Assembly (NCBI RefSeq): GCF_032191835.1
Contig: NC_083237.1
Location: 38,688,001-38,752,000 of the forward strand
Direction: 5' to 3'
Length of the DNA stretch: 64,000 bases
DNA from: Heteronotia binoei
Taxonomy: Eukaryota
The translations under genes and the position numbers were made by a program. The stretch's first letter is position 1. Each line of letters opens with the position of its first letter. The notes beneath the pieces were generated by a model, which saw only the letters and a list, made by a program, of their open reading frames with translations, made no database searches and was not told the DNA's origin. This document shows, piece by piece, positions 3,724 through 34,864 of the stretch.

Positions 3724-3887
3724 AGAATGAGTAGCCTGTATGAATAGGAAAAAAGATATATATTGAAAATGAATTAACCATGCAGCCCTAAGGAGAGCTA
3801 CATCCTTTGACTTCAATGGGCTTTGAAGTGTGTAATTCTGTTTATGATTGTGCTGTAAAGCTGTGATAAGTACAAGAAAGATACAGA

Positions 3888-3952
3888 CAGTCTTCCACTC
3901 CACATTCTTCACAAAAAAACAGCCTTCCACTCCACATTCTTCACAAAAAAAA
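3888..3952. repeat. Two-copy tandem duplication, ~32-bp unit
   Basis: cag(t/c)cttccactccacattcttcacaaaaaaa is repeated twice, upstream of the OR start. Confidence 0.85.
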
Positions 3953-4049
3953 CACATTTTGTACAATTTCCATATTAGTATTAACAAAGGAATATGATCC
4001 ATTATTTCTGTCTGTGCTGCCCTTCTCCTTAGTGAGGACCCAAAGAAGC

Positions 4050-4212
4050 TTATATCATTATCCAATTTCATCTTCACAACAACCTGGAGAGATAGATCTG
4101 CCTAACAGTATATGACAGGCCCAAAATCAACCAGCAGCCTTCTATGGCAGAGTGTTGATTCAAACGTCGGTCTCCTTGACTTGGGCCCAACATTTCTAGC
4201 CATTATACCACA
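4050..4212 (-). mobile_element. Degenerate tRNA/core-type SINE relic
   Basis: The ...tcttcacaacaacc...ggcagagtg..ttcaaac...tctcc...ccattatacca pattern is shared with relics at ~10990-11130 and ~31550-31690. Confidence 0.45.
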
Positions 4213-8212: not shown

Positions 8213-9184
8213 TCAGTTGTTGTGGCAAAGCCTCCTTTCCAAAACAGAATGTTCTCTGATCATCAAACTCCTCATTGCCAATTTCACTTCCTTATTCCGC
8301 AGGCTGTATATAAGAGGGTTGAGTGTTGGTGTTAAAATATTGTACAGAACCCCAACAAGCTGGTCTCTTTCAAGCGAGTAGCTGGATGTAGGACGGAAAT
8401 AAGTGAAGATGCCAGAACCATAGAACAAAATCACAACTGTCAGGTGGGATATGCAAGTTGAAACAGCTTTGTGACTCTGCTGTTTCTGCCGACTGTTCAA
8501 AATAGCATGAAGGATGAAAGCATAGGAGACTAGAGTGAAGAAAAAAGGGCTAAGCCCTACAAAGACACCCACTGTGAGAAGAGCTGCTTCATTGACTGAT
8601 GTGTCTGAACATGAGATACTCAGCAGTGGAGGGATGTCACAGAAAAAATGGCTAATTCCATTAGATTGGCAGTACGACAGACGGAATGTGAGTGTTGTAT
8701 GGAGAGAAGCGTTGAGGATGCCACAAATCCAGGATGTGGCAGCAATCTGGAGGCAAGTCCATTTACTCATGAGTCTGGTATAGCTTAATGGGCAACATAT
8801 AGCAAAATAACGATCCAAAGCCATAGAGGCCAGTAGAAATCCCTCAGTGCCCACTAAAGTTACAAGGAAGTACATCTGTGCAGCACATCCCATGAAAGAA
8901 ATGCTTGGAGATTCAACCCAAGTATCTGCTAACATTTTTGGTACAGTCACAGAGATGTAACAGACATCTAGGAAAGAGAGGTTGCCAAGAAAGAAATACA
9001 TAGGAGTGTGGAGTGTCTGATTTAAGAGAATCACAACAGTTATGAGTGAATTTCCTAATAAGCAGATAGTATACATGATAAGAAAGAGAACAAAAAGGAA
9101 GCTTTTTCCTTGCTTGACTTTGACAAATCCCAATAACATGAATTCCTTGATGGATGTTTGATTCTCAGAGCAGGACAGGTTCAT
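8213..9184 (-). CDS. Olfactory receptor, class II (OR5V/OR12-like), 323 aa
   Basis: Intact ORF from MNLSCSENQTS with LHTPMYFFL, MALDRYFAIC, KAVSTCISH and PTLNPLIYSLRN. A polypyrimidine tract and AG acceptor lie just upstream of the ATG. Confidence 0.92.
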   Translation of the reverse strand: MNLSCSENQTSIKEFMLLGFVKVKQGKSFLFVLFLIMYTICLLGNSLITVVILLNQTLHTPMYFFLGNLSFLDVCYISVTVPKMLADTWVESPSISFMGCAAQMYFLVTLVGTEGFLLASMALDRYFAICCPLSYTRLMSKWTCLQIAATSWICGILNASLHTTLTFRLSYCQSNGISHFFCDIPPLLSISCSDTSVNEAALLTVGVFVGLSPFFFTLVSYAFILHAILNSRQKQQSHKAVSTCISHLTVVILFYGSGIFTYFRPTSSYSLERDQLVGVLYNILTPTLNPLIYSLRNKEVKLAMRSLMIREHSVLERRLCHNN

Positions 9185-12179
9185 GATTTCTAATCTAAAT
9201 CTTAGAAATACAAAAAAAAAGTAAGCATGTGGCATAAGTGCTGCTGCAAATTTTAGAATATCGCATTTAGATATAAGGAAATGATACAAGCTTCATCACA
9301 CTCACAGAGATCCCTTGAATATCAATTCTTGGAATACCTTTGTATGTCAACTGTTATTTATTGCAACAGGAAACTGTTACATGTGCTGGCATTAGGAGAG
9401 TATGTCATGGTGGTTTAGAAAGATTTCCTGCTCTCTCTCTCCCTCTCGCTCGCTCACACACACCTTTATTATGAACTAGCCACCTTGCAAATGTTCCCCC
9501 AAACATTTTTAGTACCTAGAGAGTGACTTTCTGATTCTCTCCATTTTTGAATAAACTTGTTTCCTCTCTTCCCCATTTATATGTCTCTGGAAGTCTGCGG
9601 CTTTACAACCATTAAGAAGGCACTGATGGTGAAGAGATGGAAGTGAACCTAGAAGTTCATGGTTCAATTTTTTCAACCACCATGAAGATGACGGGTGGTC
9701 TTAAATTGCCTGAATCTATCTAGATTTTCCCACCTTCAAAGGAATACCAATCAACCTTTGATGTTTGTTGAAAGGATTTCTGACAATGCCTGTGAAATGC
9801 CATCAGTACTCAAAACATTATAGCGTGGATCATCTCAGTGTTCCCCCCCCCCTCCAACTGGCACAAGAGAGGAGGGATAATCTCATGAAAATTACCTTCC
9901 TTGCTGCCTCATTCTCTTTCCCATGAAAATGAAATGAAATTTCTAACACAATCTTTTGAGGGCTCAAAAGCTACTCAGCTTCCCTTCTGAATCAGCAGAA
10001 AAGCTAGTGGAATTCAACCACACATGCATGCAGAGATAGAAAGAGTGTTCAACACAAATATAATGATATTCTATTCGTCTATTTATTATGCAATCTGTTG
10101 TTCCTTGGTAGAAAGTCAGCAAAGGCTAGACATATAACTCCATGTGAGTGTTATATTCTAGTAAGGTCCATTCAGTTTAATACCACTAAGATTAAAAAAT
10201 GTACATGCTCATCCTATATATATATATTGTTCTGAAAATGTTCTCATACCTTTGTAATTCAATATCCAGTGGGCAACATTGTGCAATTGCAGTTGTCCAG
10301 GAAATGTGATGTAAATCTTACATTCCTGCCATTATTCATTCTCTGCTTCATACTGTTCTGTTGTTTGTTTTCTGGCAGCCCACTATCAATACCTGGAGAC
10401 TTTTTTAACTATTAAAAATAAATATTTCGGCATTTCACCTGATCTGCATGCCCCCAAATTGCCTTGTTCACAGGTCCAGGTTCACAGAAAGTTAGTTGAC
10501 AGGCCATTTCAAAAATCCATCCATAGTACCAATTAAGCCAAACCATTGCGTAGAAATCTGAAAATGTATAGGAGATTGGACTTTGGATCAAGTTCAGACC
10601 TGGAAGTTTTTAAAGCCTTTCTTCCCTGATCTACTACTGCATCATGTGGTTCTATAGGTGCCCATTACTGTCTCCTACCTTTGTAGTCTAGTTAGCCTAT
10701 CTAAGTGCTGCCTATTAACTCCACATATGTAGTCATTTTACTAGCTGAGAATTCCTTGTACTGGAGGAACATGTTTTTAGCTTAGTGGAGTGAAAAGATA
10801 CAACTTGTGGCTATTTGTGTCAGAAAGAGGAATGAAAACAGGATAAACTACACATTTTAAATCAGCACTACCATTTGGAGAACATTTAAAAGAAATGGTA
10901 ATAGAATATTTTAAATAGAGGGGAAAGTATTTATTTATTTCATTGATACCCTGCCTTTTCTTCAATAGGGACCCAAAACAGTTTACATTTATTGACCTCT
11001 CTTCCATGTTTATTCTCACAACAACTCTCAGAGTCAGACTGAGATTGGGTGACTGCTCACCCAGTGATCTTTTTTGGCAGAGTGGGTGTCAGACCTCGGT
11101 CTCCCAGAGCTTAGTATGACACCCTACAACTAAACTGTGTTAGCTGTCATCAATAAAGCCCTAAATTACATTTTCTCCTAATACAGAGATGATTAAAAAC
11201 ACTGATGTATCTTGTGCCACTATAGACATTGCCATTTTCTATATAAAGATCCACATATTAGTAGACACGACACTACTGTAATAGTCCAACGTGGATGTTG
11301 CTGTCTAGGCAGAATCTAGCTCACCAAATAAACATACAAAAACTGAATCTTGGAATAACAAAATCAATTCATTTCAAATGCAACATTATTTAGATGTACA
11401 GAAACCAATATATCAGACTGAGCACCTTTGATTTAATGGCAACCAATCAACACACCATCTTATACAGTATCTCCCTTGACTGCATACTTTTTGGTCCAAA
11501 GCTGGGCATGAGAGTGCAAGAAGCAAGAGAATCTCCTTTTATATATGCTGGTGTATGATGTAATTTAATTCTTTGGAGAAGCTGTTGGGTATATCCCATT
11601 AATGAATCCAGGGGTATAAAATAATAGCACAATATAGTAAAATGCATGATAAAATAAAGCTTTCTCTAAACATGCCAGAAATTATTGATTATATTAGAGT
11701 ACCCTCAACCTGAATCTAAGCCATATGAAAAGGAGCTTCCAAAGCCAACAGTAACTCATCCATTTGGCAGATTTGGGAGGGGGCACTCATTATTAAATAG
11801 TTGTGTTGACTTTATTAATATAATTATTATCTAATTGCAGATTGTATTATTTTGCCCTTACTACAGTCTGACTACTCTCACTACCTATTGTCATTGTTAA
11901 CATATCAAGTGCAATACTTATGCTTTGTTTTCAGATTTCTGTAATTCTAGTTACATATAACAGATGTCTTGTTCTATTGATTGCATTGATTTATATTATG
12001 CAATCCACATTGATTCTCAAAGAGTAAGTCAGATTATAATTAATAAAATTAAATAAAATGAATACCAACCCATAAGTAGTGGCATTCAAGGCTCTCATAT
12101 CACACAGGGGTCTTGACACTGCATAAGTCTTGTCTTAAATTTTGTCTTTATTTTTAGTTGTTTATATTGTAATTTTAAT

Positions 12180-14035
12180 TTGCTTTGAACTTCTTCTCCA
12201 GACTAAACATCCCCAGCTCCTTCAACCTTTCCTCATAGAACTTGGTCTCCAAACTCCTCACCATCTTTGTCACCCTCCTCTGGACCCATTCTAGCTTGTC
12301 TATATCCTTCTTAAAATGTGGAGCCCAAAACTGAATACAATACCCCAGGTGAGGTCTTACCAGAGCAGAGTAAAGCGATACCATCACATATTGTGATCTG
12401 GACACTATACTTCTGTTGATACAGCCCAAAATGGCATTTGCCTTCTTAGCCACCGCATCACACTGTTGACTAATGTTCAGCATATGATCCACTAAAATCC
12501 CTAGATCCTTTTCGCACATACTACTGCTAAGACAAGTCTCCCCCATCCTATAATCATGCACTGGATTTTTCCTACCTAAATGTAGAAATTTACATTTATC
12601 CCTGTTAAAATTCATTTTATTGATTTTAGCCCAGTTTTCCAGCCTGTCAAGGTCATCCTGTATCCTGTTTCTGCCTTCTTTTGAGTTTGCAATCTCTCCC
12701 AATTTAGTATCATCTGCAAATTTAGTAAGCATTCCCTCTATTCCTTCAACCAAATCATTTATAAAGATGTTGAACAATACAGATCCCAGGACAGAACCTT
12801 GAGGCCCTCCACTTGTGACTCCTCTCCAAGAGGATGAGGAACCATTCACAAGCACTCTTTGGGTGCGATCTATCAACCAGTTACAGATCCACCTAATGGT
12901 AACAGGATCCAAACCCCATTTTACCAACTTGTCAACAAGGATAGTATGTGGAACTTTATCAAAAGCCTTATTGAAATCAAGATAAGCAATGTCTACAGCA
13001 TTCCCCTGATTCAGCAAGGTAGTCACTTTCTCAAAAAAAGAGAACAGGCTAGTCTGATGTTCTTGAGAAAACCATGCTGGCTCTTAGTAATCACATCCAT
13101 TCTTTCTAAATGTTCCAGGACCGACTGTTCGATGATTTGTTCTAAAACTTTTCCAAGTATAGATGTCAAGCTGATGGGTCGGTAGTTACCTGGATCATCT
13201 TTTTTCCCCTTCGCCCGCCTCCAATCTTCCAGCACCTCTCCTGTTCTCCAGGAATTCTCAAAAATAATAGCCAGAGGCTCAGAAATTACATCCTCAAGCT
13301 TTTTTAGAACTCTTGGATGCAATTCATCTGGCCCTTAGGACTTAGTTTCATTTAAAGAAACTGTTTATGTACTACCCCTATGCTGATCCTAGGTTGGAAC
13401 TTCATACCCTCCTTATATGTTCTGTTTTTGCCATGTTTAGCACCATTTCCCTCCAAAGAGAAGACTGAGGAAAAGTAGGAATTGAGCAGTTCCACCCTCT
13501 CATTACCTGTTACAATTTCACTTTCTTGCCCTCGCAATGGGCTTACTATATCCTTGCCCTTTTTCTTACTCTGAACATAAGAAAAGAACCCTTTTTTTGT
13601 TGTTTTTAGCATCTTTGGCCAGTCTAAGCTCATACTGAGCTTTAGCTTTCCTAACTTTTTCTCTACAAGCACTGGTGATTTGTTTATATTCATCCTTGGT
13701 TATAAGGCCCTCCTTCCAATTCCTAAAGGAGTCTTTTTAATTTCTCAAGTCTTTAGAGAGCTGTTTATGGAGCCACTTCGGCTTCTTTAGGCTTTTTCCA
13801 TTTTTTCTTCTCATAGGAATCGTCTGTGATTATGTTTTCAGTATTTCACTTTTAAGAAACTCCCACCCCTCCTGAACCCCCTTCCTTCTAAGTATCTCTG
13901 ACCATGGGATTTTACCCAGCATAGTTCTAAGTTTATCAAACTTTGCCTTTCTGAAGTCCAACTTATAAGTCTGACTACGTATACCTTTTCCCTTTGCTAA
14001 GACTGTAAATTCCAAAATCATATGGTCACTACTGT
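12180..14035 (-). mobile_element. CR1 LINE ORF2 fragment (endonuclease end through RT), frameshifted and truncated at both ends
   Basis: ORF pieces give SDHMILEF, PGNYRPISLTS, YLDFNKAFDKVPH, PQGSVLG, KFADDTKL and ELGMFSLEK. Confidence 0.92.
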
Positions 14036-16269
14036 CCAGGGTGTAGCTTCTGTGCGATTGATCAAGCCTGGCAAAGCAATCTGTGATGCAGAAGGAAGCA
14101 AGAGTGAGGGAAAAGGAAATGGACAACAACCAGTTGTTTGGGGGGCTGAAATGAGCTTTCTAGGGGCCTGATTTGGCCCCTGGGCTGAATGTTTGACACT
14201 CCTGCTTTAAATGGTCTGGGACCAGAGTATTCAAATTATTGCATGGTATCATATGAACTTTCCTCAAAGTTAAAATCTGGTGCAGAGGCTCTTCTCTATG
14301 TGCCTTCGTCTTCCAAAGTAATGAGAGTGGTTGGTTTCTATAGGTGTTTTTTTTCCTGTTGTAATGCATCATTTATGGAATAGCTTCCCTGTATCTGTTC
14401 ATTTGACACACCTGAATTTTAGATGCCGGGTTCAGATACTCTAATTTCCCCAGACATTTGGCTAAAGGCAAAATACTACCCCCACACAAGCACTCCTCTT
14501 GGTTGTCTTAGCATGCCATATTATTTTAAAACTGCATGTTTATTATCTTTATTGTAATGGGCTAAATCCAGTGGTGGGATTCAGCCAGTTCGCACCGGTT
14601 CTACCAAACCGATACCTAATGTGCTATCGGATCGGCAGAACCGTTTGTTGGCCGGGTGCCTCCTGTTAATTTTTATTACTTTTTTTGTCCACCGCAGCTT
14701 GCCCTGGCCTGGACAATGGAGCCTCCAGCAGCCTAGCTCAGGAATCCATTCCCTTGAGCTGCAATCTTGGGTGCATACAGGCCCAGCGCTCCACCGTTGG
14801 GAGCTCATGGCTGCTGCTTCCGCAGGTGCCTCGCTGCTCTATGCCTTTAAGGGGAGGGTGGTGACAGAAGGGTGGGGGAGGCTGGTTTCGGGGAGCTCTG
14901 CCTGCGCACTGTGATCCCCTCGGCTGGTCCGGGAGAAGAGGAACGGAGATAATGTGCAGGCAGGTGGGAAGGCGGGCCCTGAACAGGGAAAGGAGCGCGC
15001 AGGCAAAGCAGCCCATTGTGGGGCTCTGAAAGGAACCACCGGGAAGGGCCTGAGAAGTGGCGCTCATTGGGTTGGGGAACAAAGGGGGGGCAGGCACAAA
15101 GGGCGAGATTGACGGCCCGCGCTGCCCCCATGCTGGGCTCGGGCAGGCAAACGAGCTGCGGTTTTGTTCCCCTGCTTTTTCCCCAGCGGGCAGGGGGCGG
15201 GCGGGCAGTGGCTTGGGAGTCGCTGTTCAAGGCCGGCTTTGTCTTGCCGGACCTGGGAAGGCCGGAGGGCAGCTGAAGCCTGCACAGACACAACCAGCGG
15301 TGCTCCCTCCATCCAAAAGGGGGCTGGGAGGAGGTGGGGGGGCTTGGAGAATGGTGCTATTGGCACCGACCCGGAAGAGCCCTCGTGGCCAAGGCCCAAG
15401 CAGAGCTTTGCAGGTGGGGTCTGCCATCTCCCCCGCCCCCCCAACCACAAGGACCAGTGGCCCACGAGCGCGCCTGAGCCGGCCACGTCTTGTCTCGCTT
15501 GTCAGAGGCCCGGCAGGAGTGCAGCATCAGTGGTGGTCACGACGACCCGAGCGCGCAGTTCCAGAGCCAGGGAAGGCTCGGCAGAAAAGTGGCAGAGCTG
15601 GGGGGCGAGGTGGGGGAGGAGGAAGGTGGCTTGCTGGGATCATTCCCCCCCAAAAAACCAAACCCCTTGGTTAAACGCGATGTCCCTTCAGCACACAAGC
15701 GGCTGGCTGGGCTGTGGGCTAGCGGGAAGGGGCTTCCTTCCTGAGCTGCTGGCTTTCTGTGGGCAGAAAGTCTCCGGCGGAGGCAACGCGCCTGCAAAGC
15801 CAGAGGCACCCCCATGCCGCCGCTCTGGTCCTTTGGCCGCCGCTCTCGGCTCCCCGCTTCTCTTCTCTCCTGCCGCTCGCCTGCCTGCCCCACTTGGGGA
15901 GCGCAGCCTCCAGGTGGAGCACAAAAACAGCGGGATCTCCCCTCCACCCCAGCCTCTCCGGCGTGCAGAACTGCTGAGGCTGCCAAAGGGCAGCCATCCG
16001 GGGTCTGTGCACAGTCACGGGAGATATCCTTGGTTCCCTTTTGCTCCACGGAGCAAAGCTTCCCCCAGTTGCTCAGCTGGCAGCCAAGACAGGGACTCTC
16101 TCTTGGGTTCCCAGTCGATGCCGAGGGTAAACTGACTAGGCCAGACCAAATGGCTGGCTGGCTCCCACCCAGGCCACGGGTCATGAAACTGTTCTGCCCG
16201 GTCGGTGACAACCGCTTTGCTAGAAGGCGGCATAGTCAGGCTGGATTCAAGCAGGGAACTCTGGGCTGG

Positions 16270-16452
16270 ATGGTCCAGGCTAGTCCCACCTTTTCAGATC
16301 CTGGAACCTAAGCAGGGCAGGCCCTGGCTAAGGCTTGGGTGGGAGACCACCAAGGAACTCCAAGGTTGCCGGGCAGGCAGAGCCAGGGAATGGCAAACCA
16401 CCTCTGGCCTTGGAAAACCTACAGTCGGCTGCAACTTGACGGTGCTTTCTGC
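16270..16452 (+). mobile_element. 5S rRNA-derived SINE (5S-Sauria type)
   Basis: cagatcctggaacctaagcagggcaggccctggctaaggcttgggtgggagacc resembles the 5S rRNA internal control region, followed by the Bov-B-like tail ggcaaaccacctct...cttgacgg. Confidence 0.7.
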
Positions 16453-16909
16453 CACCAAGAGAAAGGGATTCCCCGAAGTGCAGCATGTCACACCTGAGGG
16501 GCCCTGTGGTTGCTGCCCCTCTTGATGCTTTAGGCCCAGGGGGTCGTGAAAAGCGCAGGGGAAAGGCCGGCCCGGTCCCCTCCAGTGAGGCTGCGCATCA
16601 CAACCTTGTCATCGTGTGAGGTGCATCACAGCCGAGGCTGCCAAGAATTTCATCCCCCTTGACCTTAAGTGGTAGCCATCTGCAATAACGACAGCGACCT
16701 AGCTTTCGCCCTGCTCACAAGTTGCAAGCAACTCAGGTCCAATCCGTCTACAGCTGTACACTTGAATAAGAGATGTGTTGCGCAATTCTCCAGGCCTCTG
16801 GACCCTGATACAAACCCCACATTTGTCCATGGTTTGAAAAGTGAATGCCTTTTGGATCCTTCTTACAAAAAATTGTACTCACATTGGGCAGAATGTAGAA
16901 GCGATCATT

Positions 16910-17020
16910 GTAACTTATGAACATGATTTTTCTTTGCTCAAATTAATCAGAATGTCTCAGAAACAAGCTTAATTTGTTTCTGATTAATTTGAGCAAAGAA
17001 AAATCATGTTCATAAGTTAC
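16910..17020. repeat. Perfect 43-bp inverted repeat with a 25-nt spacer
   Basis: 16910-16952 is the exact reverse complement of 16978-17020. Confidence 0.95.
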
Positions 17021-17402
17021 TAATTAGAGAAAAGAGGACTTACTCCGAGTGACGGAGGACTCTCATTTGCCCTAAGAGACCAACATATGCTCTTCCTCCC
17101 ACTGGTCTGTCTGAAGGGGTGCCTGCAAGGAAACAAGCAGAGGGTTGCTGGGGCTAGTTCTCTTCACACTCAAGCTTCCCCCCCAACCCCTCCCCCCATA
17201 CTATCGCTATGGAAGCCTATATTCGCATTTTTATGTACTTTAGAAGCAGGGATTTATAAAACTCAACCACCCCAATTTAATTGCAACAGAAAGACCTGTG
17301 ATCTCGTGTATATAGAACTGAACTAGAACCGAATGGAGTTTGCAATCCTGAACCCTTAGGATCGCCAGGTTCCTGCATCCTGAACAGTCCTGACAGGAAT
17401 AA

Positions 17403-17516
17403 GGGTGTATTCACACTACACTCTAAATAAAGCATTTTGCAACTGGATTTTTACTGTGTAAGAATAGCAAAAATCTAGTTGCAAAACACATTATTTAATG
17501 TAGTGTGAATGCACCC
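17403..17516. mobile_element. Palindromic MITE (PIF/Harbinger-like)
   Basis: TIRs GGGTGTATTCACACTACA and TGTAGTGTGAATGCACCC, flanked by TAA and AAA (imperfect 3-bp TSD). Confidence 0.6.
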
Positions 17517-17607
17517 AAACTTTAGTGAGAATTTTCTTGGCATTATAATGCAATGATGGGAAAATGTGTCCTCTGTTGGTATAGTGTGTTAAAACTGGAA
17601 CCTCTAA

Positions 17608-18039
17608 TGTCAAGTCTGCTATGGGTTACTCAATATCTGTATTAAGGTTGGTTCTGAAGTGAAGGAGTCTGGGTACTTTACAGTGTACACCGGGGGCTGC
17701 TAGCTCACTCTCCTGCCCCCTCTCTAGAAATGCCTTTGTTGTGTAACCTGCTTTGAAATGCTAACCTGTGAACAAGATAGTGGCGCCTTCCCAGCCTTGT
17801 TCTCTGTGGGGAGTATGGGGTGTCAAGACTTCGGTCTGGGAACGAAAGAAGTAGCATCCTAGTGTGAAGATGTGTTGCATAGATTGCCCCCCGTAGGAAT
17901 CCTTTAGATTCATACTTTAAATACTGGATTAGTGCATATGTGTTTCAGTCCTTCAATCTCTGCCATGGTCCACAGTTCTGATTACAATAAACTTGCTACT
18001 TTATCAAGAGACTCGTTATTGAATTCAGCCGACTTGACA
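17608..18039 (+). repeat. 5' LTR (432 bp)
   Basis: 7-bp terminal inverted repeat, TATA-like TTTAAATA at 17916-17923, Inr-like TCAGT centred on A17947, AATAAA at 17986-17991. Confidence 0.95.
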
Positions 18040-18041
18040 TT

Positions 18042-18051
18042 TTGAAGGACT
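18042..18051 (+). promoter_or_regulatory. Primer-binding site TTGAAGGACT, complementary to the element's own LTR (self-priming type)
   Basis: Exact reverse complement of AGTCCTTCAA at 17947-17956. It lacks the TGG start of tRNA-type PBSs. Confidence 0.75.
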
Positions 18052-18092
18052 CCCTATCTTGGAGTTCAACCTTTCCGGCAACTGAAAAGGCG

Positions 18093-19590
18093 ATGTCCGA
18101 ACAGTCTCCGGAGAATGGAGGATTCCCAACCAGAGTGGAGGGGGCCGAGACACCCTGGCACATCCATACTGCCAGAAGGACCGCGGCCTCCCCTCCACAG
18201 TTTCAGCTGGTGGCGACCCCACGGCAATACCAGCCAAGAACCTCCACTACGCTGATGGATCAAGCCCCGGTCCGTCGGGAGGCGATCATGACCCGCCACA
18301 CCAAGCGGGTCCAACTGGCCGAGGCCGCCGCCGTCCACCCGGGCGAGGCGAGCGAAGGCGCCAGCGCCGCGGGGGCGCAGGACCTCGAGAGTGGAAGCGA
18401 AGGGGCCGAGTGCGGAGCGGAGGACGGAGGGGCGAGCCCCAAGGACCAGACCGATGAGGAGTACGAGACGTTTCGCGCGATGGTCCGCAGGGAGATCGAC
18501 GGGGCGGTGAGAGACCTAAAGGACCAGATGCAGACCCTGACCGCGCAGCTGGGCAGAGCGCTGGGGGTGACCGGGGCTCGCCAGCAACAGCCAGCCCCGG
18601 CGGGTCCGCGGGGACCCCCGGCTCGACAGGGCCCCGCCGCTCCTCCACCCGGAGCGGCCCCGCAAGCCCCAGCGGCGCCCCCCCTGCCCCGGTCAGACAA
18701 AGAGACCTGGGGGGGGCCGGGAGCTGGACGCCACGTTCGACGGGGACCCGGAGGAAGTGAACTACTTCGTGATCCAAGCAAACAGCTACATGCACTACTG
18801 GGGGGACTCATTCCCCGATGAGATGAGCCGCGTGGACTACCTCGGGTCGAAGCTACGGGGCGCAGCGAAGAAGTGGTATGTGAGCCTATGCGAAACCAAC
18901 AGCCCGGTCCTCCATTTCGTAAACACTTTCGTGCAGGCCCTGCTGACCCAGTACGAGGACCCCCTGCAAGAAACCCGAGCGCTGGCGGCGCTGCGGAACA
19001 TGAAGCAAGGGGCCCGATCCATCCGGGAGTACGCGGCCGACTTCCAGGCCAACGCCGCCCGGGCTCGGAACTGGAACAAGGTGATGAAGATCGAGCACTT
19101 CACCAATGGGCTGAACCCGAGCATCCTGGATAGAGCGCTCACGCAAGCCCGCCCCGATACCCTGGTGGGGTGGATTCAGCTGGCGGGGGAGGTGGAGACC
19201 AACCTGAAACGAGTGGCGATGCTGCGCCAAGCACTGGCCGCCGGCAGGGGAACGCCGAAAGCAAGCCCCGGGAAGGCTGAGCCACCTAAAGTCAAGAAGC
19301 AGGCGGTGGCTGCCCCGGGGGGGTCCCGACGTTGTTTTCGGTGTGGGGACCCCAACCATCTAGCCTCCGGCTGCCCCCAATCAGCCACCGGGGCCGCCCC
19401 ACCGCAGGGAGCCACCCGCCCGGGCACCCCCGGCCCCAAGAAAACCACCGGCCGCCCTAAGGACGCGGCGAAGAGCAGCGCGCTCCTGGTGCAAGACGAC
19501 CTACAAGAGGAGGAGGTGCGTCTGTCAGAGGAGCTGGCCGAGCTGGCGTGGGAAGAGGAGCCGGCGGGAAACGACGCCGACCTGCTTTGA
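18093..19590 (+). CDS. gag: Gag (capsid plus CCHC nucleocapsid), one frameshift in the G8 run at 18709-18716
   Basis: ORF 18042-18821 joins ORF 18757-19590 to give ...WGG/RELDATFDGDPEEVNYF... and the zinc knuckle CFRCGDPNHLASGC. The start Met (MSEQSPEN) is tentative. Confidence 0.85.
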
Positions 19591-19628
19591 ACGGTGCCAA
19601 CCAGCAGGTCGACCGAGAGGAGGCACCG
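19566..19628 (+). promoter_or_regulatory. -1 programmed ribosomal frameshift signal (G GGA AAC plus H-type pseudoknot)
   Basis: The heptamer at 19566-19572 is in the correct gag phase, with a 5-nt spacer. Stem 1 CGACCTGCT/AGCAGGTCG (19578-19586/19603-19611); stem 2 CGGTGCC/GGCACCG (19592-19598/19622-19628). Pol begins in the -1 frame. Confidence 0.85.
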
Positions 19629-22600
19629 CTCACGGTGAGACCCACGGGAAGGTTGTACTTTATAGTGGTCAAATTGTTGAACCCAAAGCTAAAAAGGTTC
19701 CTACAGATCCGGGCCCTCATAGACTCGGGCTGTAATAGAGAGCTGATTTCCCCCAAGGTGGTGGAGGCTCTGGGATTGAAACGCTTACAACTGCCCCACC
19801 CCATGCACTTTGAACAGATGGATGAGTCAGTAATGGGGGGGGGGAACCCTGCACGCAAGAGACTGAGCCGTGCCCCCTGGGGATTGAGGATCACTGGGAC
19901 TCAGAGACGTTTGTGATCGCGCCCGCCTGCGGCTACCCCGTGGTCCTGGGAGTGGGGTGGTTGGAAAAGCACGAGCCCCTCATCCGCTGGAGAGCCCAGA
20001 CCATCAGATTTCCCGACCCAAGTTGCAACCAGCACCTTTGGCAGGCAGCATGGGGGCCACGAGCGCCAGCCGCTCGGGAGAGGGCGTGCGTCCTGGTGGA
20101 AGAGGTGCACCATGTCCCGGACGCCTACCGCGACCTGATGGAGGTATTTAGTGAGCGGGAGGCCAACCAGCTACCCCCCCACAGGAGCACAGACTGTGCG
20201 ATAGAACTAATCCCCGGGGAAAGCCTTCCCAGGGCCAAGCTCTACCAAATGGGGTGGGCTGAGAAGAAGGAGCTGCGAAAATTCCTAGACTTGAACTTGA
20301 AAAGGGGGTTCATCAGACCCGCGACGGCCCCCCACGCGGCCCCCGTGTTGTTTAGAAAGAAAAAGGACCACAGTCTTAGGCTTTGCACGGATTTTCGTGG
20401 GATTAACGCGATTTCCATGTCAAACGCCTACCCCATCCCCCTCATCAAAGATTTGCTAAGCACGGTGGCGGGGGGGAAGATTTTCACAAAGCTTGACCTG
20501 CGGGACGCGTACTTCCGAGTGCGCATCAAGGAGGGGGATGAGTGGAAAACGGCGTTCAACACCCCGATGGGGCAATTTGAATATTTAGTCATGCCGTTTG
20601 GATTGCAAGGGGCACCGGGGGTGTTCATGAATTTCATAAATGATGTATTGCGGGAATTTCTGTACAAGGGGGTGGTGGTGTACCTTGATGACATCATTAT
20701 TTATTCGCAAGACGAACAATCCCATGTGAAACTAGTGAGGGAAGTGCTGGCCACCCTGCTGAAGCACCAGCTCTACGCCAAGCTGTCTAAATGCGAGTTC
20801 CACCGCACGGAACTAGACTATTTGGGCTTCCGGGTGTCTGGGGACGGGCTGGCCATGGATCCAGCCAAAGTTCAGGCAGTTCTAGAGTGGGCCCCCCCGA
20901 GGACACGTAGACAGCTCCAAAGTTTCCTCGGATTCTCCAATTTCTATAGGACATTCATTGAGGGGTTCGCCCAGATCGCTCTGCCCCTAACAGACCTCCT
21001 GAAGACGAAGGGGAAGGGGGAGGAGGCAAAGCGACCAGGGGCCAGGCTGAATTGGACACCGACTTGTCAGGCGGCATTCGACCGGCTTAAACAACTGTTC
21101 ACAAGCGAGCCGGTCTTAAGCCACCCAGATGAGCGGAAGGGGTTTGTGGTCCAATGCGACGCCTCCGACGTCGCCGTAGGAGCCATTCTCATGCAGAGGG
21201 ATGAGGAGGGGAAGCTGAGACCCTGCGCTTACATTTCGCGAAAGTTCTCGGAGGAGCAGAGGAACTGGTCAGTGTGGGACAAAGAGGCTTTCGCTGTCAT
21301 GTTTGCACTGAAAACTTGGAGGTCCTGGTTGGAGGGAGCCAGGGTGCCCTTTGAGATATGGACGGACCACAAAAATCTAGAGGCACTAACAGGGAAAAGA
21401 AAATTGAGTGAAAAGCAAATCAGGTGGGCGGGCTTCTTCTCCAGATTCGACTTCACCCTGAAACACATCCCGGGGACCCGCAATTTCCTAGCAGACGCCC
21501 TGTCCAGGCTCCCACAGCATGAGAGCCAGAGAGAGGAAGTGGTAGATTCCCTGATCCCCCCCACACAAGTGGCGGCTATGGTCACTACCCGATCGCAGAG
21601 GAAAAAGGAATTGAGCGGGCTAAGCAAAGAACGAATCACCCTAGAGGCCGAACGGGAGGGAGGTGGGCGGCCGGAGGGGTTGCAGAAAAGAAAAGACGCT
21701 CTTTGGTACAAGGGGGAGAAACTGTACATCCCGGAAATATTAAGGAAAGAAATTCTCCAACTATGTCACTGCTCCAAATTAGCTGGGCACTTCGGCTATG
21801 TAAAAACCTTGCACTTGGTGCACCGGCAGTTCTGGTGGCCGTCCCTAAAGAAGGATGTGTCGGACTTTGTAGCTGGTTGCCCGGTGTGTGTGATGGCAAA
21901 AAGGAGGGGGGGGGAAAACCCCCGGGACTCCTACAGCCTCTGGAAACAGCAAAACGGCCATGGGCCATGGTGTCCATGGACTTCATAGTCGAGCTACCCC
22001 CCTCCCGGGGGAAAACAGTCATACTGGTGGTGGTGGACACGTTTTCAAAACAAGCCCACTTCATCCCCTGCAGCCAATTACCCACGGCCAAGAAACTAGC
22101 GACTTTATTTTTCGACCACGTGGCCAAACATCACTCCATCCCTGACAAGGTCATAAGTGACAGGGGGCCTCAGTTCGTTGCCACCTTCTGGCGGGAGTTT
22201 TGTAAGTTACTAGGGATGGAACAGGGGCTAAGTTCTGCCTATCACCCCCAGACGGACGGACAGACTGAGAGAGTGAACAGGGTGCTAGAGCAGTACCTAC
22301 GGTGCTTTGTGAGCCTACGCCAGTCGGACTGGGTGGACCTCCTCCCCTTCGCTGAATACGCTTACAACAACAGCGCTCACAGTTCCACAAAAGCATCTCC
22401 CTTTGCAACAGTGTTCGGGTATGAGGGAAAGCCGATTCCCATGCTGCCAGGGGGGGAGGGATTGACGGGCTCAAGTTTCGAGCAATGGTGGCAAGGTCCC
22501 AGCCAATGTTGGCCAGCCATTCAAGAAAACCTGAAGCTGGCCAAGGAGGCGTATAAGAAACAGTACGATAAAAGCCATGTGCCAGTCTGGGACTTGAAGG

Positions 22601-22932
22601 TGGGGGACTCCGTGTACCTGTCAACAAAAAACCTGCCTCTGGCACAACCGTCTAGGAAATTGGCTTTTAAGTTCTTAGGGCCATTCAAAATCAAGCGGGT
22701 AATCAACCCGGTGACAGTAGAGTTAGACCTCCCCCCTGCTCTTGGTAAAGTCCACCCTGTTTTTCATTGCAGCCTACTGCGCAGATCTCCGGGGCCGTCC
22801 AAATGGCATTCACAAGATTCACCAACCCTCCCCTCGAAGGGGGAGTGCCGGAGCCTCTCGGGGCCCGAGTTCCGGAGCCATAAATGTGACTCGCCCTCCT
22901 TGCAAGGCCGCCCGGCAGGAGGGGGATCCTAG
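19572..22932 (+). CDS. pol: Pol (protease-RT-RNase H-integrase), two frameshifts in G runs, no chromodomain
   Basis: ALIDSGC protease; LDLRDAY, MPFGL and YLDD RT motifs; DAS RNase H; HHCC and SMDF...SDRGPQF...TERVN integrase; GPF motif. Frame breaks at G10 (19835-19844) and G9 (21906-21914). Confidence 0.93.
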
Positions 22933-22943
22933 GGGGGGCAGTA

Positions 22944-23350
22944 TGTCAAGTCTGCTATGGGTTACTCAATATCTGTATTAAGGTTGGTTCTGAAGTGAAG
23001 GAGTCTGGGTACTTTACAGTGTACACCGGGGGCTGCTAGCTCACTCTCCTGCCCCCTCTCTAGAAATGCCTTTGTTGTGTAACCTGCTTTGAAATGCTAA
23101 CCTGTGAACAAGATAGTGGCGCCTTCCCAGCCTTGTTCTCTGTGGGGAGTATGGGGTGTCAAGACTTCGGTCTGGGAACGAAAGAAGTAGCATCCTAGTG
23201 TGAAGATGTGTTGCATAGATTGCCCCCCGTAGGAATCCTTTAGATTCATACTTTAAATACTGGATTAGTGCATATGTGTTTCAGTCCTTCAATCTCTGCC
23301 ATGGTCCACAGTTCTGATTACAATAAACTTGCTACTTTATCAAGAGACTC
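22944..23350 (+). repeat. 3' LTR, identical by eye to the 5' LTR but lacking its last 25 nt
   Basis: Constant offset of 5336 from the 5' LTR and no mismatch seen over 407 nt. It stops at ...CAAGAGACTC. Confidence 0.92.
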
Positions 23351-23414
23351 ATTTAGAACAATAATCGAGAAGCAACTAAAAAGCCTTATGCTATTACAAA
23401 AGGGAGATCCAAAA

Positions 23415-24335
23415 GGGTAGGTGTGTGTTGGTCTGAAGGAATAAAGTTAGAGTCCAGTGGCACCTTTAAGACCAACGAAGTTCTATTCAGGGTATGAGCT
23501 TCAGTGTGCAGGCACACTTCTTCAGATAAAATGAAATGGAAGAAAACCATTCAAACTTATAGACAGAGGCTGAACAGCAAATTAGCATATAATGATAAAG
23601 GTATTTTGAGACAAAACAGGAATAACAAGTTAAGTGTATAGTTACATGCAGGGATTTAATTAAGAGGGGAACAATAGTTGAATCAATAAATGTCAAAATA
23701 GGCAATACATGTGTAAGGAAATTCTTTCTTGTTAATTTCCTTGTGGGAAATTAACTGAGACTCCTTTAGGATGCCCCATTTGTCTTCTCTCAAGTGTGAT
23801 GGTAACAAACAGCATTTTTTGGGGGGTGCAGACTAGTGCTATGTAGGAAAATATATTTAAAGCTTCATTGCATTGCATTACAATCACTATGGTGTTCTAA
23901 ATGCTATACCAATGTATTGTTTTGTTAGAGGTGTTATGTCAGGAAAATCTATTCCTATATATTGAATTGCAATACAAACAGTATGCCAATATATTATTCA
24001 AAAAAGAAAGAAAGAAATGCATAAAATATGGAGGATGTGTAGTCCTTCTTGATGAGAATGAGTTTAGCATATATAATGAGATAAGAAACTGATATTCCTG
24101 TTAAGTCCTGGGGGTACTTGTTCTGAGTGTTGTAATAACTTGTAATTCAGCAATTTCCCTTTCCATTCTGTTCCTAAGTCAAAGGATAAATGGACACAAA
24201 TCTGACATCACTTTAACCTCCCAGGACATTCAACGGGTGACCTCAGAGTAGCTGTTATTGCAAAGTAACTTCAGGAACAAAATGGAAAAGCACATTGCTG
24301 AATTACAAGTTATTACAACACTTGGAACATAGCCC
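23415..24335. mobile_element. Penelope-like element relic (pseudo-LTR plus inverted copies of the GIY-YIG end)
   Basis: pLTR-type sequence gagtccagtggcacctttaagacc...ttcttcagat at ~23450-23527. Segments ~24115-24180 and ~24270-24330 are inverted copies resembling the C-terminal endonuclease DNA at ~39850-39910. Confidence 0.65.
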
Positions 24336-27034
24336 CCACCCCAGACCTCTTTTACTGTTCTTATTGCAGTATTTAATGCATGAATTATTAAACTACCTTT
24401 CGGTATATCTTTTGGTATAGTTAAAATGGTCATTAGGACATAGAACCTGTTGTTAATTTATTTGAATCCCACCACTGGCTAAATCCCACCAATTTATCTA
24501 GTGGTGGGGAAGAGCTGTGAGCACTGAAAAGTCTATGCTGGAGATTGTGGGTCCTGTGTGGGAAAAAGTCATGTGAAACCAGTGATAAGAGAAACTGGGT
24601 GAGAGAAAGCAAAAAAAAAAAAAAAGTAGGATCCAGTCCGCTGATAACTCACTGTGATCCTAATCACAGATATGCTGGGTGGTCAAAGGGGAGCCTTCCT
24701 CTCTTTTTTATTATCAGAAAAGCTGGTTTTATCCAACCCCATGAATTTATCTAATCATTTCACAATACCCCATGACTGCAAATTCTATATGTAAACAGTG
24801 TATTATGTAAATAATGTGGCTGTCCTGGAGTCACACAATAATTTTGAATTACTACAGATGCTAATATTATGAGAGGAAAAGATTGATAATTTCTCCTTCC
24901 TGTGCATGAGTTCCTTTATTGTGCTTTCTTTTAGATTTCTTTGTAACCAAAAAGGCTCAAACTGTAGGGTGTTCCTTAGATAGAAGGTGTACAACCCCCC
25001 TGATCATTTTGGTTGTCCTTTATTGCAATTTTTCTTACCTATGTTATCTTTTTAAAGTTGGGAAGACCAGAGCTATACACGATATCTCAAATACCAATCA
25101 TTATAGACTTGCTGAAAGATGTTATGAGAATATATTTATTTTCATTTCATTTTCTAACAATCCATAATGTGACTTTTGTCTTTGCACTGCTGCTGCACAC
25201 TAAGTTAATATTTCACATAACATCATAATCTCTGTTCTTACCACAAATTCAGATCCTGTCAGTTTTTGTGTTTTATCAGATTTAATTAGATTTAAATCAA
25301 TAATATTGATGGCATGACATTAGCTTTTTCCTTACATTTATTTAATCTGCATCCAAATTTGGATCCATACATGCAGGGTTACATTTTTGTATAATAATTA
25401 AGGAAAACAATAATTGGGAATCTCAGACCTGTGAAACACCAAACATTCAGGGTCCCCCTCATTTCTATTAAAAAGTAAATGGCACTTAATTACTATGATT
25501 TCAGATCCCTCATCTCTGCTTGTTAATTCTGAAAATGTGCATATCACTTTTACCTCACCTTGCAAAAATTGTGGGTTTTGTTTGTACATAAAAGCTTTCT
25601 CATAACATATACATATTTTAACACTATCAGTAGTTTATTTAACTTGCATGCTATATATAAATTCATCACATATAAAAACTGTACAATATACATATGAGAT
25701 AAAAGTTAATTTATGAAAAGTGAAAAGAAGAGCTTGAAAAATGAGGAGGGGGGGGAGTTCACTGGATCTGTTGTCTAATAAATTGCTAATCCCCTCTATC
25801 ACATTATGGTATGTAAGCAATGGAATTTAAGAACTGAGGAAGAATAAGAGTAATCATGGCAATAAGAAACAGTTGAAAAAATATCAAAAATATGTGTACA
25901 CAAACCAAACTTAAATTGTTTATTAATTTAAGATATGGGTGACTAATCAGTAAATGTTTCATAATTTTGATACCTGTAAAATTAACTCGCTCTTACCATG
26001 TAAATAATTTCTCACTTTGAAATATTGTACTTTTATTAACCTTGATAATTATCTTATGGAGAAGCATTGTTATAAAATTTTTTGTTAATTCTTCTTCACC
26101 CAGTTTTCCACTGAAATGCAACAATCCATTTATTTGTCTCTTTTTTGGAATTTGAAGTCAGTTGCTAATTCTGGGTTTGTTTTGTTTTTCAAAATGAAAT
26201 GAGAAGGAATGGAAAGTTCTTAAAACTTCAGAATTTTACTCCATAGATGTTTAGAGGCAGGCAAAATTTCCCCAAACCCTCCTATCCTTCTGCTAGAGCA
26301 GCACCCTGTGGTATGTAGTATAAAATAAATGCCAAAACTGAAGTTACATAAAGGTGCATTGATTTCTCTACAAGGAAAATATAAAGAGAAAAGAAAGACA
26401 AATTTCTCATTTAAAAGAGAATAAGATGAATCAATGGCTAAATCTAAAAAAATGAATTTTGTAGGCAGTCCCCCCCCAACAACACAATGCTGTTTCCTTT
26501 TACACACACACAGACAAAGGACAGAGAAGCACCTGCATCTCTAATAGTAAAATAATGGATAGGATCCAGCCTGCTTTTTCTCTCAGTCCTGCCTAATTCT
26601 CCTCATTATTACCATCCTTATTCTGGTTGGCTTTTGTTGCCAGAGATCCCAAGGTCTCCACCTTTTTCAGGTTGGTAAAAGAGAAACCTCCCTTTTTCAT
26701 CAGCCGAAAAGCTGGTTAGATACACAAGCATAAGTCTCCAGTCACCCATATTTATTTAGCAAAAAAGAGGTCTTCTTCAACTCTGAGAATTATTTCTGAG
26801 AAGGGGTGTATAGCATTGCACTTTGAAGTAATCTGTAAATGTTATCCTAAAACTTTAAGCAATGGTTATGGAAATCAGGAGAAGGTAATTAAGAAGTTTT
26901 AACAGTACTATTCATCATGTTGTCAAGAGCTCATTTTGTTGGCAACTAAATGTGATTGTCCAAAATTCAAAAAGTCTGAATTTTTTCTGTCACCTTTACA
27001 GAAAGTTATTGTTTTCTCCCCCTTCTGGCTTATT

Positions 27035-27997
27035 TCAGCCTTCCATAGAACACTTTGCCATTGAAGTTTCCCTCTTTGCAAAAATAACTTTCTTAAGGGC
27101 TGTTTTCACGTCCTTGTTCCTGAGGCTGTAAATTACAGGATTTAAAACTGGTGTAACCAAACAGTAGAACACAGCGACTAACTGATCCATATTGAAGGAA
27201 AGGTTTCGGGTAGGTCTGACATATATGAACATCATTGTTCCATAGAAGATACCAACCACCGTCAAATGGGAGGCAAAAGTGGAGAAGGCCTTTTTGCATC
27301 CGGCTGAAGAAGGGATGCCTAGAACTGTGATAATGATGGCAACATATGAAATTATAGTTATTGTGAAAGAGCCAACAAGGATAAATGAACAGATAAAGAA
27401 ACTCAGCATTTCATTCAGTTGGGTCCTATTGCAGACCAGCCTCAACAAAGGCAAGATGTCACAAAAGAAGTGATCCACCACATTGCTGCCACAGTAGTTG
27501 AGCTGAGAGATAAGGATCACTGGTATTAATGGTAGGATCAAACCAATGATCCAGCACCAGGCAGCAAGTTGAATATAAACAGTGCTATTCATAATGGTGT
27601 TATATCTCAGAGGGGATCGTATAGCCACATACCTATCATATGCCATAGCAGCTAAAAGCAGGCATTCAACACCACCAAGACCATGGAAAAAATATATCTG
27701 GGCAAGGCAATTGTTGAAGGATACAATATTCTTTTTCCTCATGAGGTCAACCAGCATTGTTGGGACTGTGACTGAGGTAAAACAAATCTCCAGAAAGGAA
27801 AAGTTGCCCAGAAAGAAGTACATGGGTGTATGGAGAGAGGGTTCATATCTGGTGATAAAGACTATGGCAACATTCCCCATTAGTGATAGTGTGTACATTA
27901 TTGAGACCAGAACAAGTAATGGTACTCTTATATTTTGCAGACTGGGAAACCCTGTGATAATAAATTCATTCACTCTTGTATGGTTTGAAATATCCAT
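27035..27997 (-). CDS. Olfactory receptor, class II (OR6/OR11-like), 320 aa
   Basis: Intact ORF MDISNHTRV with LHTPMYFFL, MAYDRYVAIR, KAFSTFASHL and PVLNPVIYSLRN. A polypyrimidine/AG acceptor lies ~20 nt upstream of the ATG. Confidence 0.92.
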   Translation of the reverse strand: MDISNHTRVNEFIITGFPSLQNIRVPLLVLVSIMYTLSLMGNVAIVFITRYEPSLHTPMYFFLGNFSFLEICFTSVTVPTMLVDLMRKKNIVSFNNCLAQIYFFHGLGGVECLLLAAMAYDRYVAIRSPLRYNTIMNSTVYIQLAAWCWIIGLILPLIPVILISQLNYCGSNVVDHFFCDILPLLRLVCNRTQLNEMLSFFICSFILVGSFTITIISYVAIIITVLGIPSSAGCKKAFSTFASHLTVVGIFYGTMMFIYVRPTRNLSFNMDQLVAVFYCLVTPVLNPVIYSLRNKDVKTALKKVIFAKRETSMAKCSMEG

Positions 27998-29601: not shown

Positions 29602-29871
29602 CAGGGGTGGCCAAACTGGCTCAGGAGCCACATGTGGTTCTTTCACACATATTGTGCGGCTCTTGAAGCCTCCACTACCCTGTCAGCCAGCTTGGAGAAG
29701 GCATTTGTCTCTTTAAATCACTTCTCCAAGTCAAACCAGCTGACAGCTTGGAGAATGCATTTAAAGTTGCTTTCTTTCCATTCTTCCCTCCTTCCTTCCT
29801 TCCTTGTGACTCTCAAACATCTGATGTTCATGTCTTGTGGCTCTTATGTTAAGCAAGTTTGGCCACCCCTG
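29602..29871. mobile_element. hAT MITE (270 bp)
   Basis: TIRs CAGGGGTGGCCAAAC and GTTTGGCCACCCCTG, with a perfect 8-bp TSD TTCTAGAA (29594-29601 and 29872-29879). Confidence 0.9.
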
Positions 29872-34445: not shown

Positions 34446-34864
34446 GTATTTGGATGGCAGAGCACCAAAGAAGTTCTGGGTCATGATGCAGAAGAAGGTA
34501 ATGGCAAACCACTTTCAAATGTCTCTTACCTTGAAAACATAATGGGATTGCTGTGGGTCAGCTGTGACTTGACAGCACATTCCGCTGCCACCATTTATAG
34601 AATATCTTTTTGACTGGTGGCTATAAAGGGCACAAGAGACTTGAAAGCAAAAAAAAAAAGGGGGGGGAGAATGGAACCTAGTGATACAATAGGCAGGGCA
34701 GCAACATTGGCAAGAAAGATCACCTGGAGACTGGCATCCCTACAAAGTTTTGGCAACCATACTGGTTGAACCTGGCTCAATGTGGGATTTAGGGACCCCT
34801 TCACCTATACATGCTTTCATAACATCACAGTTTCTAAAATAAGAAGACTGCAAATTTATACCCT

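Follow-up and report, generated by a model that had tools for sequence, protein, structure and literature searches.

A 9.9-kb stretch within an olfactory-receptor cluster of the gecko Heteronotia binoei is a single genuine insertion of a transposase-less hAT transposon, which most likely contains foreign non-coding filler and was later invaded by a very young gypsy retrotransposon. A transposase-less hAT with foreign cargo is a kind of element already known, and as it stands the composite is an ordinary outcome of capture and nested insertion. It provides a clean, sharply bounded vertebrate hAT shell around foreign DNA, with ends that recur in a snake MITE and in a relative that has a transposase. 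The window that we analyzed is the whole stretch of 64,000 nucleotides from contig NC_083237.1, and a sequence-only reading of it had proposed one hAT-bounded, transposase-less unit with a whole LTR retrotransposon as movable cargo. A single unit, rather than two unrelated MITEs, is what we found; the movable retrotransposon is the part that we abandon, as nothing indicates that this hAT ever mobilised its gypsy and the gypsy-carrier idea is without support. Our account of the ends, the TSD, the hAT family membership, the lack of a transposase and the gypsy anatomy comes from direct observation, and the features are collected in Table 1.

Table 1. Components of the 9.9-kb hAT composite, with positions numbered from the first letter of the window.
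Feature	Position	Strand	Basis
Left TSD copy, 8 bp GCTAAATC	14561..14568		Sequence; agrees with NNTNNANN pattern
hAT left end	14569..14676	+	15-bp TIR 14569-14583; GGTTCT at offset 28, its reverse complement at offset 68; 7 CpG kept
T-rich linker, from family-shared left end to GC-rich block	14677..14690		Boundary inferred from stop of other-copy contigs
GC-rich, apparently non-coding block, candidate captured DNA	14691..16250		GC about 65%, CpG o/e mostly 0.44-0.63
Diverged SINE, 5S-rRNA-like head 16275-16374	16255..16460	+	21.6 bits, E 0.041; high read depth in bin 16255-16451
Unique, untranscribed spacer, GC falling	16461..16909		Zero depth in all four RNA runs; no second copy in window
Perfect palindrome, 43-nt arms, 25-nt spacer	16910..17020		Arms 100% complementary; unique in window
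Abundant MITE, GGGTG...CACCC ends	17403..17516		Self-inverted match; high read depth; loose ends at 17423, 17516
Gypsy 5' LTR, complete, starts TGTCAAGTC, ends GACTTGACA	17608..18039	+	Read directly
Gypsy coding region: gag, protease, RT, RNase H, integrase	18042..22932	+	ORFs in several frames
Gypsy 3' LTR, last 26 bp missing	22944..23349	+	100% identical to 5' LTR over 406 bp
Short spacer	23350..23423		No match elsewhere in window
Penelope-like relic, CpG-free, internal 57-nt inverted repeat	23424..24329		75-82% to 39.4-40.2 kb and 58.6-59.1 kb
hAT right end	24330..24477	-	TIR 24463-24477; GGTTCT 35 bp from tip; single CpG
Right TSD copy GCTAAATC	24478..24485		Sequence

The outer boundaries are as the sequence-only reading had described them. 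The TIRs (CAGTGGTGGGATTCA) agree at 15 of 15 positions, the same 8-mer lies on either side of the pair, and a subterminal GGTTCT is present near each tip. An 8-bp TSD, short TIRs starting with CAG (YARNG) and a subterminal motif repeated at both ends are the features of the hAT superfamily, and the GGTTCT sites are putative transposase binding sites. The duplicated 8-mer follows the TSD pattern NNTNNANN, which is listed for Anolis hAT-N7 and hAT-N8 (PMC3014272 Table 1). For a chance expectation, we searched the window and 200 first-order Markov simulations for an inverted pair of 11-mers bordered by a perfect 8-bp repeat, no more than 20 kb apart. The simulated windows yielded no TIR-plus-TSD pair, and the real window yielded five matches, which correspond to the 9.9-kb element, two small hAT MITEs and two long-inverted-repeat artefacts. 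The pair that bounds the 9.9-kb element is well beyond chance. The reported lack of a transposase also held up, as the ORFs of the window contain no hAT domain and 59 hAT transposase fragments had no tblastn match anywhere in the window. No partner (inner) hAT ends were found inside the element, which indicates that its ends do not come from two separate MITEs and led us to reject a two-MITE or macrotransposon reading. A second copy of the composite was not found within the window. The TIR is also similar to a tRNA 3' end in reverse complement, with a tRNA-Leu primer as the literature match; ARAGORN detected no tRNA, and we take this resemblance as coincidence.

Both ends have relatives in other genomes. 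The left end is 86-97% identical to left-type ends in contigs L003-L048 over the first 32-49 bp, and the right end is 90% identical to the corresponding end of a snake MITE (L048:6152-6203) and 85% identical to L024 and L031. This MITE, which spans 341 bp in Ahaetulla prasina (L048:6153-6493), has the same two unlike ends as the gecko element. Both unlike ends also occur in eukaryotic elements of 2.4-3.3 kb in JGI metagenome/ENA contigs, which are L006 (2418 bp, perfect 8-bp TSD), L018 (3146 bp, perfect 8-bp TSD) and L047 (3261 bp). In L006 and L047, as in the window element, GGTTCT lies at offset 28 on the left and at offset 35 on the right. Likeness between the gecko copy and these snake, JGI and ENA elements is limited to the terminal 32-52 bp. 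To judge from the sequences, left and right end together form the unlike pair of a single hAT family. The element in L047 (5162-8422) has the same TIRs together with an ORF that matches Dimer_Tnp_hAT (PF05699) with 26.8 bits, where the cut-off is 21.4; the hAT dimerisation domain is therefore found through this relative only, as the window copy has no transposase. The ORF of L017 has relatives of the hAT type. Viral and prokaryote genome contigs contained no matches to the hAT ends. The JGI contigs have one repeat in common with a snake, at 85%. Other copies of the left end are present in organism A, where reads and contigs cover about 14584-14676, at least one of them from about 14558, and stop near 14676.

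Between the ends, the GC/CpG-rich DNA of the sequence-only reading is present, and it extends for about 1.6 kb rather than ~2 kb and has an intermediate CpG level, with no classical CpG island. GC content ranges from 59 to 68%, and CpG o/e falls to ~0.3 near the right end of the block, compared with a background of 0.03-0.24. Contigs that are ~95% alike, such as a 472-nt contig on 15195-15651, were recovered at low depth and from RNA run X2 only. No Pfam domain was detected in the block, and its ORF had no match among 1.84 billion representative proteins or among 5.8 billion proteins in a search blind to those <178 aa. The block appears to be non-coding, and it could be an unrecognised low-copy repeat. 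We rejected the idea that it is a retrocopy, with the T-rich run as a minus-strand poly(A) tail, because it has no TSD and other hAT copies already contain the start of the T-rich run. As candidate non-TE host DNA, the interior offers this non-coding block, which is low-copy in the RNA runs; much of what remains is TE-derived.

Those TE-derived parts largely match the earlier description. The 5S-like head of the SINE is present, and its score lies below the Rfam gathering score of 38. The palindrome is perfect as stated, and its read depth of zero shows that it forms no repeat family in the RNA runs examined; the interior MITE was likewise confirmed. Both the palindrome and the MITE resembled plant miRNA families in Rfam, and we dismissed these matches, all of which fall below gathering and reflect hairpin shape alone. 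The Penelope-like relic pairs with two further relics in the window, from which it is 18-25% diverged, and it contains a peptide motif that we take to be GIY-YIG-like.

The gypsy element is young, as claimed, with no differences between its LTRs over the 406 bp compared. It is not the whole or near-intact retrotransposon that had been described. In an intact Ty3/gypsy element, both LTRs are complete, a TSD is present and gag-pol is uninterrupted; here the 3' LTR is truncated, no target duplication was found around the element, and the frame changes near 18.8, 19.9 and 21.7-22.0 kb. The missing 26-bp LTR tail occurs nowhere else in the window. The gypsy is the youngest component of the composite, and the identity of its LTRs suggests that it most likely landed after the hAT. 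We infer this order from relative ages and parsimony, and the simpler history for the gypsy is a later nested insertion with a small deletion thereafter.

Taken together, we consider it probable that the composite is a non-autonomous hAT that was filled by gap repair and later received the gypsy and a small deletion. The route of filler acquisition and the sequence of events are our reconstruction. A hAT transposase supplied in trans would have recognised the 15-bp TIRs and the GGTTCT sites, and the element would have been excised elsewhere and inserted at GCTAAATC, with duplication of those 8 bp. In place of the transposase gene, it would carry about 4.2 kb of foreign non-coding DNA, comprising the 1.6-kb GC-rich block (~95% like a relative elsewhere), remnants of old SINE and Penelope elements, the MITE and a fresh palindrome. 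This filler would most likely have entered by the Pack-TIR route, copied in through template switching as double-strand gaps were repaired, and we lean slightly toward its acquisition before the jump to the present site rather than in place. The gypsy would then have integrated into the hAT interior, and a small deletion would have taken away both the final 26 bp of the gypsy 3' LTR and the target duplication. A Pack-like origin is plausible for the ~4.2-kb non-gypsy interior.

The sequence-only reading had the full 9.9-kb unit, gypsy included, as a Pack-like hAT that transposed, or can still transpose, as one piece, which we regard as very unlikely. The perfect TIRs match the family consensus exactly, the subterminal motifs are retained, and hAT vectors such as Tol2 are able to carry >10 kb. 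Activity of hAT elements in this lineage is also demonstrated, for a different family: two related geckos lack a hAT MITE that the window has at 29602-29871, and have only one TTCTAGAA or TTCTAGCA there. The contigs of these relatives (L001 and L002) are colinear with 30.8 to 24.6 kb of the window; similarity of L001 ends at 24615, 130 bp before the right TSD, and its final 144 nt gave no useful match, and L002 ends earlier than L001. Mobility in one piece conflicts with the identical gypsy LTRs, which would confine the jump to the last ~0.4% of divergence. Reads from the family's other copies are at least about 4% diverged from this left end, a second point against it. The damage to the gypsy and the lack of a transposase in the window count against it as well, and no active partner transposase was found for the 9.9-kb hAT.

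A less distant competitor, which we consider unlikely, holds that only a MITE of a few hundred bp moved, like the 341-bp snake form, and that it was enlarged wholly in place by nested TE insertions and transposition-independent gap filling. The snake does have such a short form, bounded by the same pair of ends; the MITE, SINE and gypsy are ordinary insertions; and animal Pack-TIRs are mostly single-copy and formed without transposition (PMC8277862). In 57% of such transposition-free cases, a parental copy lies within 15 kb (PMC8277862). Here, the 14.5 kb on the left and the 39 kb on the right hold no parent of any interior segment, which argues against enlargement in place. It is also a point against it that no TSDs of their own were found for the SINE and Penelope pieces. 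Both pieces seem to predate the perfect TIR and TSD, but this could also result if gaps were filled from a template that was itself old. For the Penelope relic, its 18-25% divergence from its kin and its lack of CpG make it look older than a later in-place insertion allows, given that the 46 bp of TIR plus TSD are perfect: the probability of no change is exp(-46d), or 1% at d = 0.1. An assembly artefact is the least probable of these readings and highly improbable in itself. It would place a mis-join or collapse in the repeat-rich interior, for example at 23349/23350, such that the ends are not 9.9 kb apart in the chromosome. The LTR truncation without a TSD is indeed unusual, and indel errors could account for the broken frames of a gypsy whose LTRs are identical. 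However, matching TSDs at both outer junctions are hard to obtain by mis-join, and no N run lies within the element.

Distant hAT ends can mobilise all of the DNA between them in the maize Ac/Ds macrotransposons, which use the outer ends of two elements and retain the inner ends inside. The gecko element differs from these in having no inner ends. A close parallel among animal Pack-TIRs is Pack-hAT-N8_XT of the western clawed frog (Tan et al. 2021, PMC8277862); in both, hAT ends and a TSD surround GC-rich, non-coding DNA that is, or in the gecko may be, of non-TE origin, with no transposase. The gecko filler is larger (about 4.2 kb versus 291 bp) and is a mosaic that includes old repeats. Multicopy Pack-TIRs prefer GC-rich captures, and a Pack-TIR is defined by flanks that each span 10 bp or more of a TIR TE's terminals, by an interior of non-TE host DNA and by a unique parental copy of at least 90% identity and 80-120% length that is not TE-flanked (PMC8277862). 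The flanks of the gecko element have this property; with no parent or second copy in the window, the element is at most a candidate Pack-TIR. It is improbable, though slightly less so than mobility of the 9.9-kb unit, that the 4.2-kb form without the gypsy exists in many copies as a Pack-hAT that can still be mobilised and that spreads a CpG-rich, promoter-like block in the gecko genome, of which this copy took up a 5.7-kb LTR retrotransposon that could travel by cut-and-paste. If the GC-rich filler were multicopy between these ends, a squamate case would join the very few multicopy animal Pack-TIRs, which numbered four in a 2021 survey (PMC8277862).

The hAT-N/MITE families of squamates, which were recently active in lizards, are alike in their CAG-initiated TIRs of 12-16 bp, their 8-bp TSDs, whose third and sixth positions are T and A, and their lack of a transposase (Novick et al. 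2010, PMC3014272). They span 135-810 bp in contrast to 9.9 kb here, and none of the TIRs listed for them is CAGTGGTGGGATTCA (PMC3014272). The snake MITE and the elements in L006, L018 and L047 belong to the same family as the gecko element, with identical or near-identical TIRs, the same unlike left-type and right-type subterminal sequences and 8-bp TSDs. The interiors of these snake, JGI and ENA relatives consist of family sequence or decayed transposase, whereas that of the gecko element consists of GC-rich filler and a gypsy retrotransposon.

The window is an olfactory-receptor cluster, and one of these receptors has gecko proteins as its best named relatives (Euleptes, 90%; Eublepharis, 88%). 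The background DNA is about 40% GC with a CpG observed/expected ratio of 0.03-0.24. A further receptor fragment at 38631-39110, which has a partial 7tm_4 match, is probably a pseudogene, and a Penelope-like relic follows it shortly after, at about 39448-40188.

Principal features of the receptor cluster, the hAT ends and the gypsy element
Feature	Position in the window	Description
Olfactory receptors	2782-4077, 8213-9289, 27035-27997, 57583-58566	
TSD	14561-14568 and 24478-24485	GCTAAATC
TIR	14569-14583 and 24463-24477	CAGTGGTGGGATTCA; exact reverse complement at the second position
gypsy 5' LTR	17608-18039	begins TGTCAAGTC, ends with the reverse complement of TGTCAAGTC
gypsy 3' LTR	22944-23349	identical to the 5' LTR over 406 bp; stops 26 bp short

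The sequence-only reading had described terminal inverted repeats (TIRs) 9.9 kb apart, both flanked by the same 8-mer, and our recheck of the coordinates and exact repeats agreed with this description. Only four copies of the 8-mer are present across the window. Scanning for any 11-mer inverted repeat no more than 20 kb apart with a perfect flanking 8-bp direct repeat, we obtained five matches in the real window versus none in 200 Markov simulations, which indicates that the TIR-plus-TSD pair at 14561-24485 is real. Two of the other four matches belong to small hAT MITEs whose TIR differs, and the remaining two are spurious matches from one long inverted repeat (41796-46293), the arms of which flank the only N run of the window (45945-46096). 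With T as its base 3 and A as its base 6, the TSD follows the pattern tabulated for Anolis hAT-N7 and hAT-N8, and none of the TIRs in that report matches the TIR found here (PMC3014272). Immediately outside the right TIR, 24480-24494 overlaps the TSD and matches that TIR at 12/15 positions, with a short inverted partner at 24500-24509, which indicates that the target already resembled the element's own end before insertion. This resemblance could reflect an ancient, degraded end from this family, target preference, or coincidence at odds of about 1 in 1000.

Past the 15-bp TIR, the left and right ends differ from each other except for an AC(C/A)GGTTCTA motif. Using the TIR plus this motif to scan metagenome contigs, we found 44 contigs from five JGI samples of a eukaryote, two of which carry complete elements with perfect 8-bp TSDs (L006, 2418 bp; L018, 3146 bp) whose left and right ends resemble the corresponding ends in the window. 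A 3261-bp copy with perfect TIRs in an ENA contig (ERZ22157276; L047:5162-8422) contains a series of disrupted ORFs, including one that scores above the Pfam cut-off for the hAT dimerisation domain, and the relatives of an ORF within another family copy are annotated as KIAA1586-like, some with DUF4371 and FAM200/ZBED5 domains. The GGTTCT motif keeps the same spacing in the window, L006 and L047, 28 bp in from the left tip and 35 bp in from the right. A 341-bp MITE from the snake Ahaetulla prasina (GCA_028640845.1; L048:6153-6493) matches the window right end with 90% identity over 52 bp at one of its ends, and the window left end with 97% identity over 32 bp at the other. Because these copies carry the same ends, we conclude that the ends in the window form the genuine left and right pair of a single hAT family, which has autonomous-size and MITE-size relatives.

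Two other arrangements could place such ends 9.9 kb apart, namely two separate MITEs or a macrotransposon, but the window contains no inner partner ends, which excludes both. The proposal of one hAT-bounded unit is thereby upheld. As that reading had also stated, there is no trace of a transposase in the window. The element showed every hAT feature for which we looked, and its ends agree with those of a Pack-TIR, for which it is a candidate.

The JGI-sample eukaryote (L003-L046) has dozens of copies with the 15-bp TIR and the subterminal motifs, which are 86-94% alike and in a few cases 99-100%, and the snake carries MITE forms. The gecko copy resembles those in L003-L048 only over the terminal 32-52 bp. 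This spread points either to an ancient hAT lineage with a wide distribution or to horizontal transfer.

Transposition of hAT elements has occurred in this gecko lineage. Two related geckos lack a 270-bp hAT MITE of a different family (29602-29871; TIR CAGGGGTGGCC..., TSD TTCTAGAA); their orthologous contigs (L001:1480-1560; L002:1225-1305) have a single TTCTAGAA or TTCTAGCA at this point, a clean empty site that shows lineage-specific transposition. A second small MITE of 136 bp (54545-54680) shares the CAGGGGTGGCC TIR and is flanked by perfect copies of its TSD, GTGTAGAT. At the 9.9-kb element, similarity to L001 is lost 130 bp before the right TSD.

We aligned four RNA runs from organism A, the species recorded for the run in which this stretch is best represented, to 13300-19200 at 80% likeness. 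Depth was zero in the unique flank (14285-14481) and at 16649-17042, and almost nil throughout 16452-17239, which includes the perfect palindrome. The SINE and MITE had high depth, as expected of abundant families. Immediately left of the unique flank, a very high-copy repeat (13300-14284) reached a depth of about 10,000 in contig runs, with sharp boundaries near 14042 and 14118. The hAT left end was covered by a few reads and contigs, derived from other copies. All of these have a G at 14606 that restores a CpG, as well as T at 14631, and three additional differences from the window copy are present in the cleanest reads. These copies span about 14584-14676, at least one of them from about 14558, which indicates that left-end relatives exist in organism A and that the shared part ends at the T-rich run. 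A short contig from run X2 matching 14584-14656 has a k-mer depth of about 2000, equal to that of the abundant SINE and MITE, and a highly expressed transcript in that sample probably includes a copy of the left end.

Depth over the GC-rich block (14679-16254) was 0 in X1 and X4 and at most 0.43 in X5. X2 gave low-depth contigs over the whole block; one of them, 472 nt long, aligns to 15195-15651 with 20 mismatches and 28 gap letters. Since the unique neighbouring DNA had no depth in X2, these contigs stem from another locus, and an RNA library thus reveals at least one diverged relative of the block. The ORFs of the block owe their length to base composition only and read as non-coding; they have no Pfam domain, and searches of 5.8 billion proteins and of 1.84 billion representatives gave no relative. 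The 5S-like SINE head scored 21.6 bits, below gathering, and the CpG-free Penelope-like relic is 75-82% identical to two other relics in the window. Neither these two nor the palindrome has a target duplication of its own. The palindrome (16910-17020) has perfect 43-nt arms with a smaller hairpin nested in its spacer, has no second copy in the window, does not appear in any of the RNA runs used, and could be a fresh inverted duplication by template switching.

The gypsy encodes gag, protease, RT, RNase H and integrase, spread over ORFs in several frames. The 26-bp tail missing from its 3' LTR is found nowhere else in the window, and no target duplication is definable. The gypsy is thus very young but not intact, its 3' junction affected by deletion or by mis-assembly, and the cargo is not the whole LTR retrotransposon that had been claimed; the further proposal of a mobile carrier for a near-intact gypsy overreaches. 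An older relic of a related gypsy, with an integrase ORF, lies on the minus strand at 33105-34447 (66% identity to 21450-22794).

The TIR plus TSD comprises 46 bp with zero changes, which limits the divergence accumulated after insertion to about 6.5% (exp(-46d) = 0.05 at d = 0.065). With 0 differences between its LTRs, the gypsy is younger than any other datable part, and is most simply read as a later integration, with the hAT already present at this site. Both the Penelope relic and the SINE appear to predate the hAT insertion, and were therefore probably acquired within a stretch of ordinary genomic DNA, whether ahead of the jump to the present site or through in-place gap filling. The window, which extends 14.5 kb left of the element and 39 kb right of it, holds no parental copy of the interior segments, and this mildly favours capture before that jump.

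Taken together, these results identify a soundly observed element of a known kind. In a 2021 survey, most animal Pack-TIRs were single-copy and formed in place without transposition, 57% of parents lay within 15 kb, and the rare multicopy examples favoured GC-rich captures (PMC8277862).
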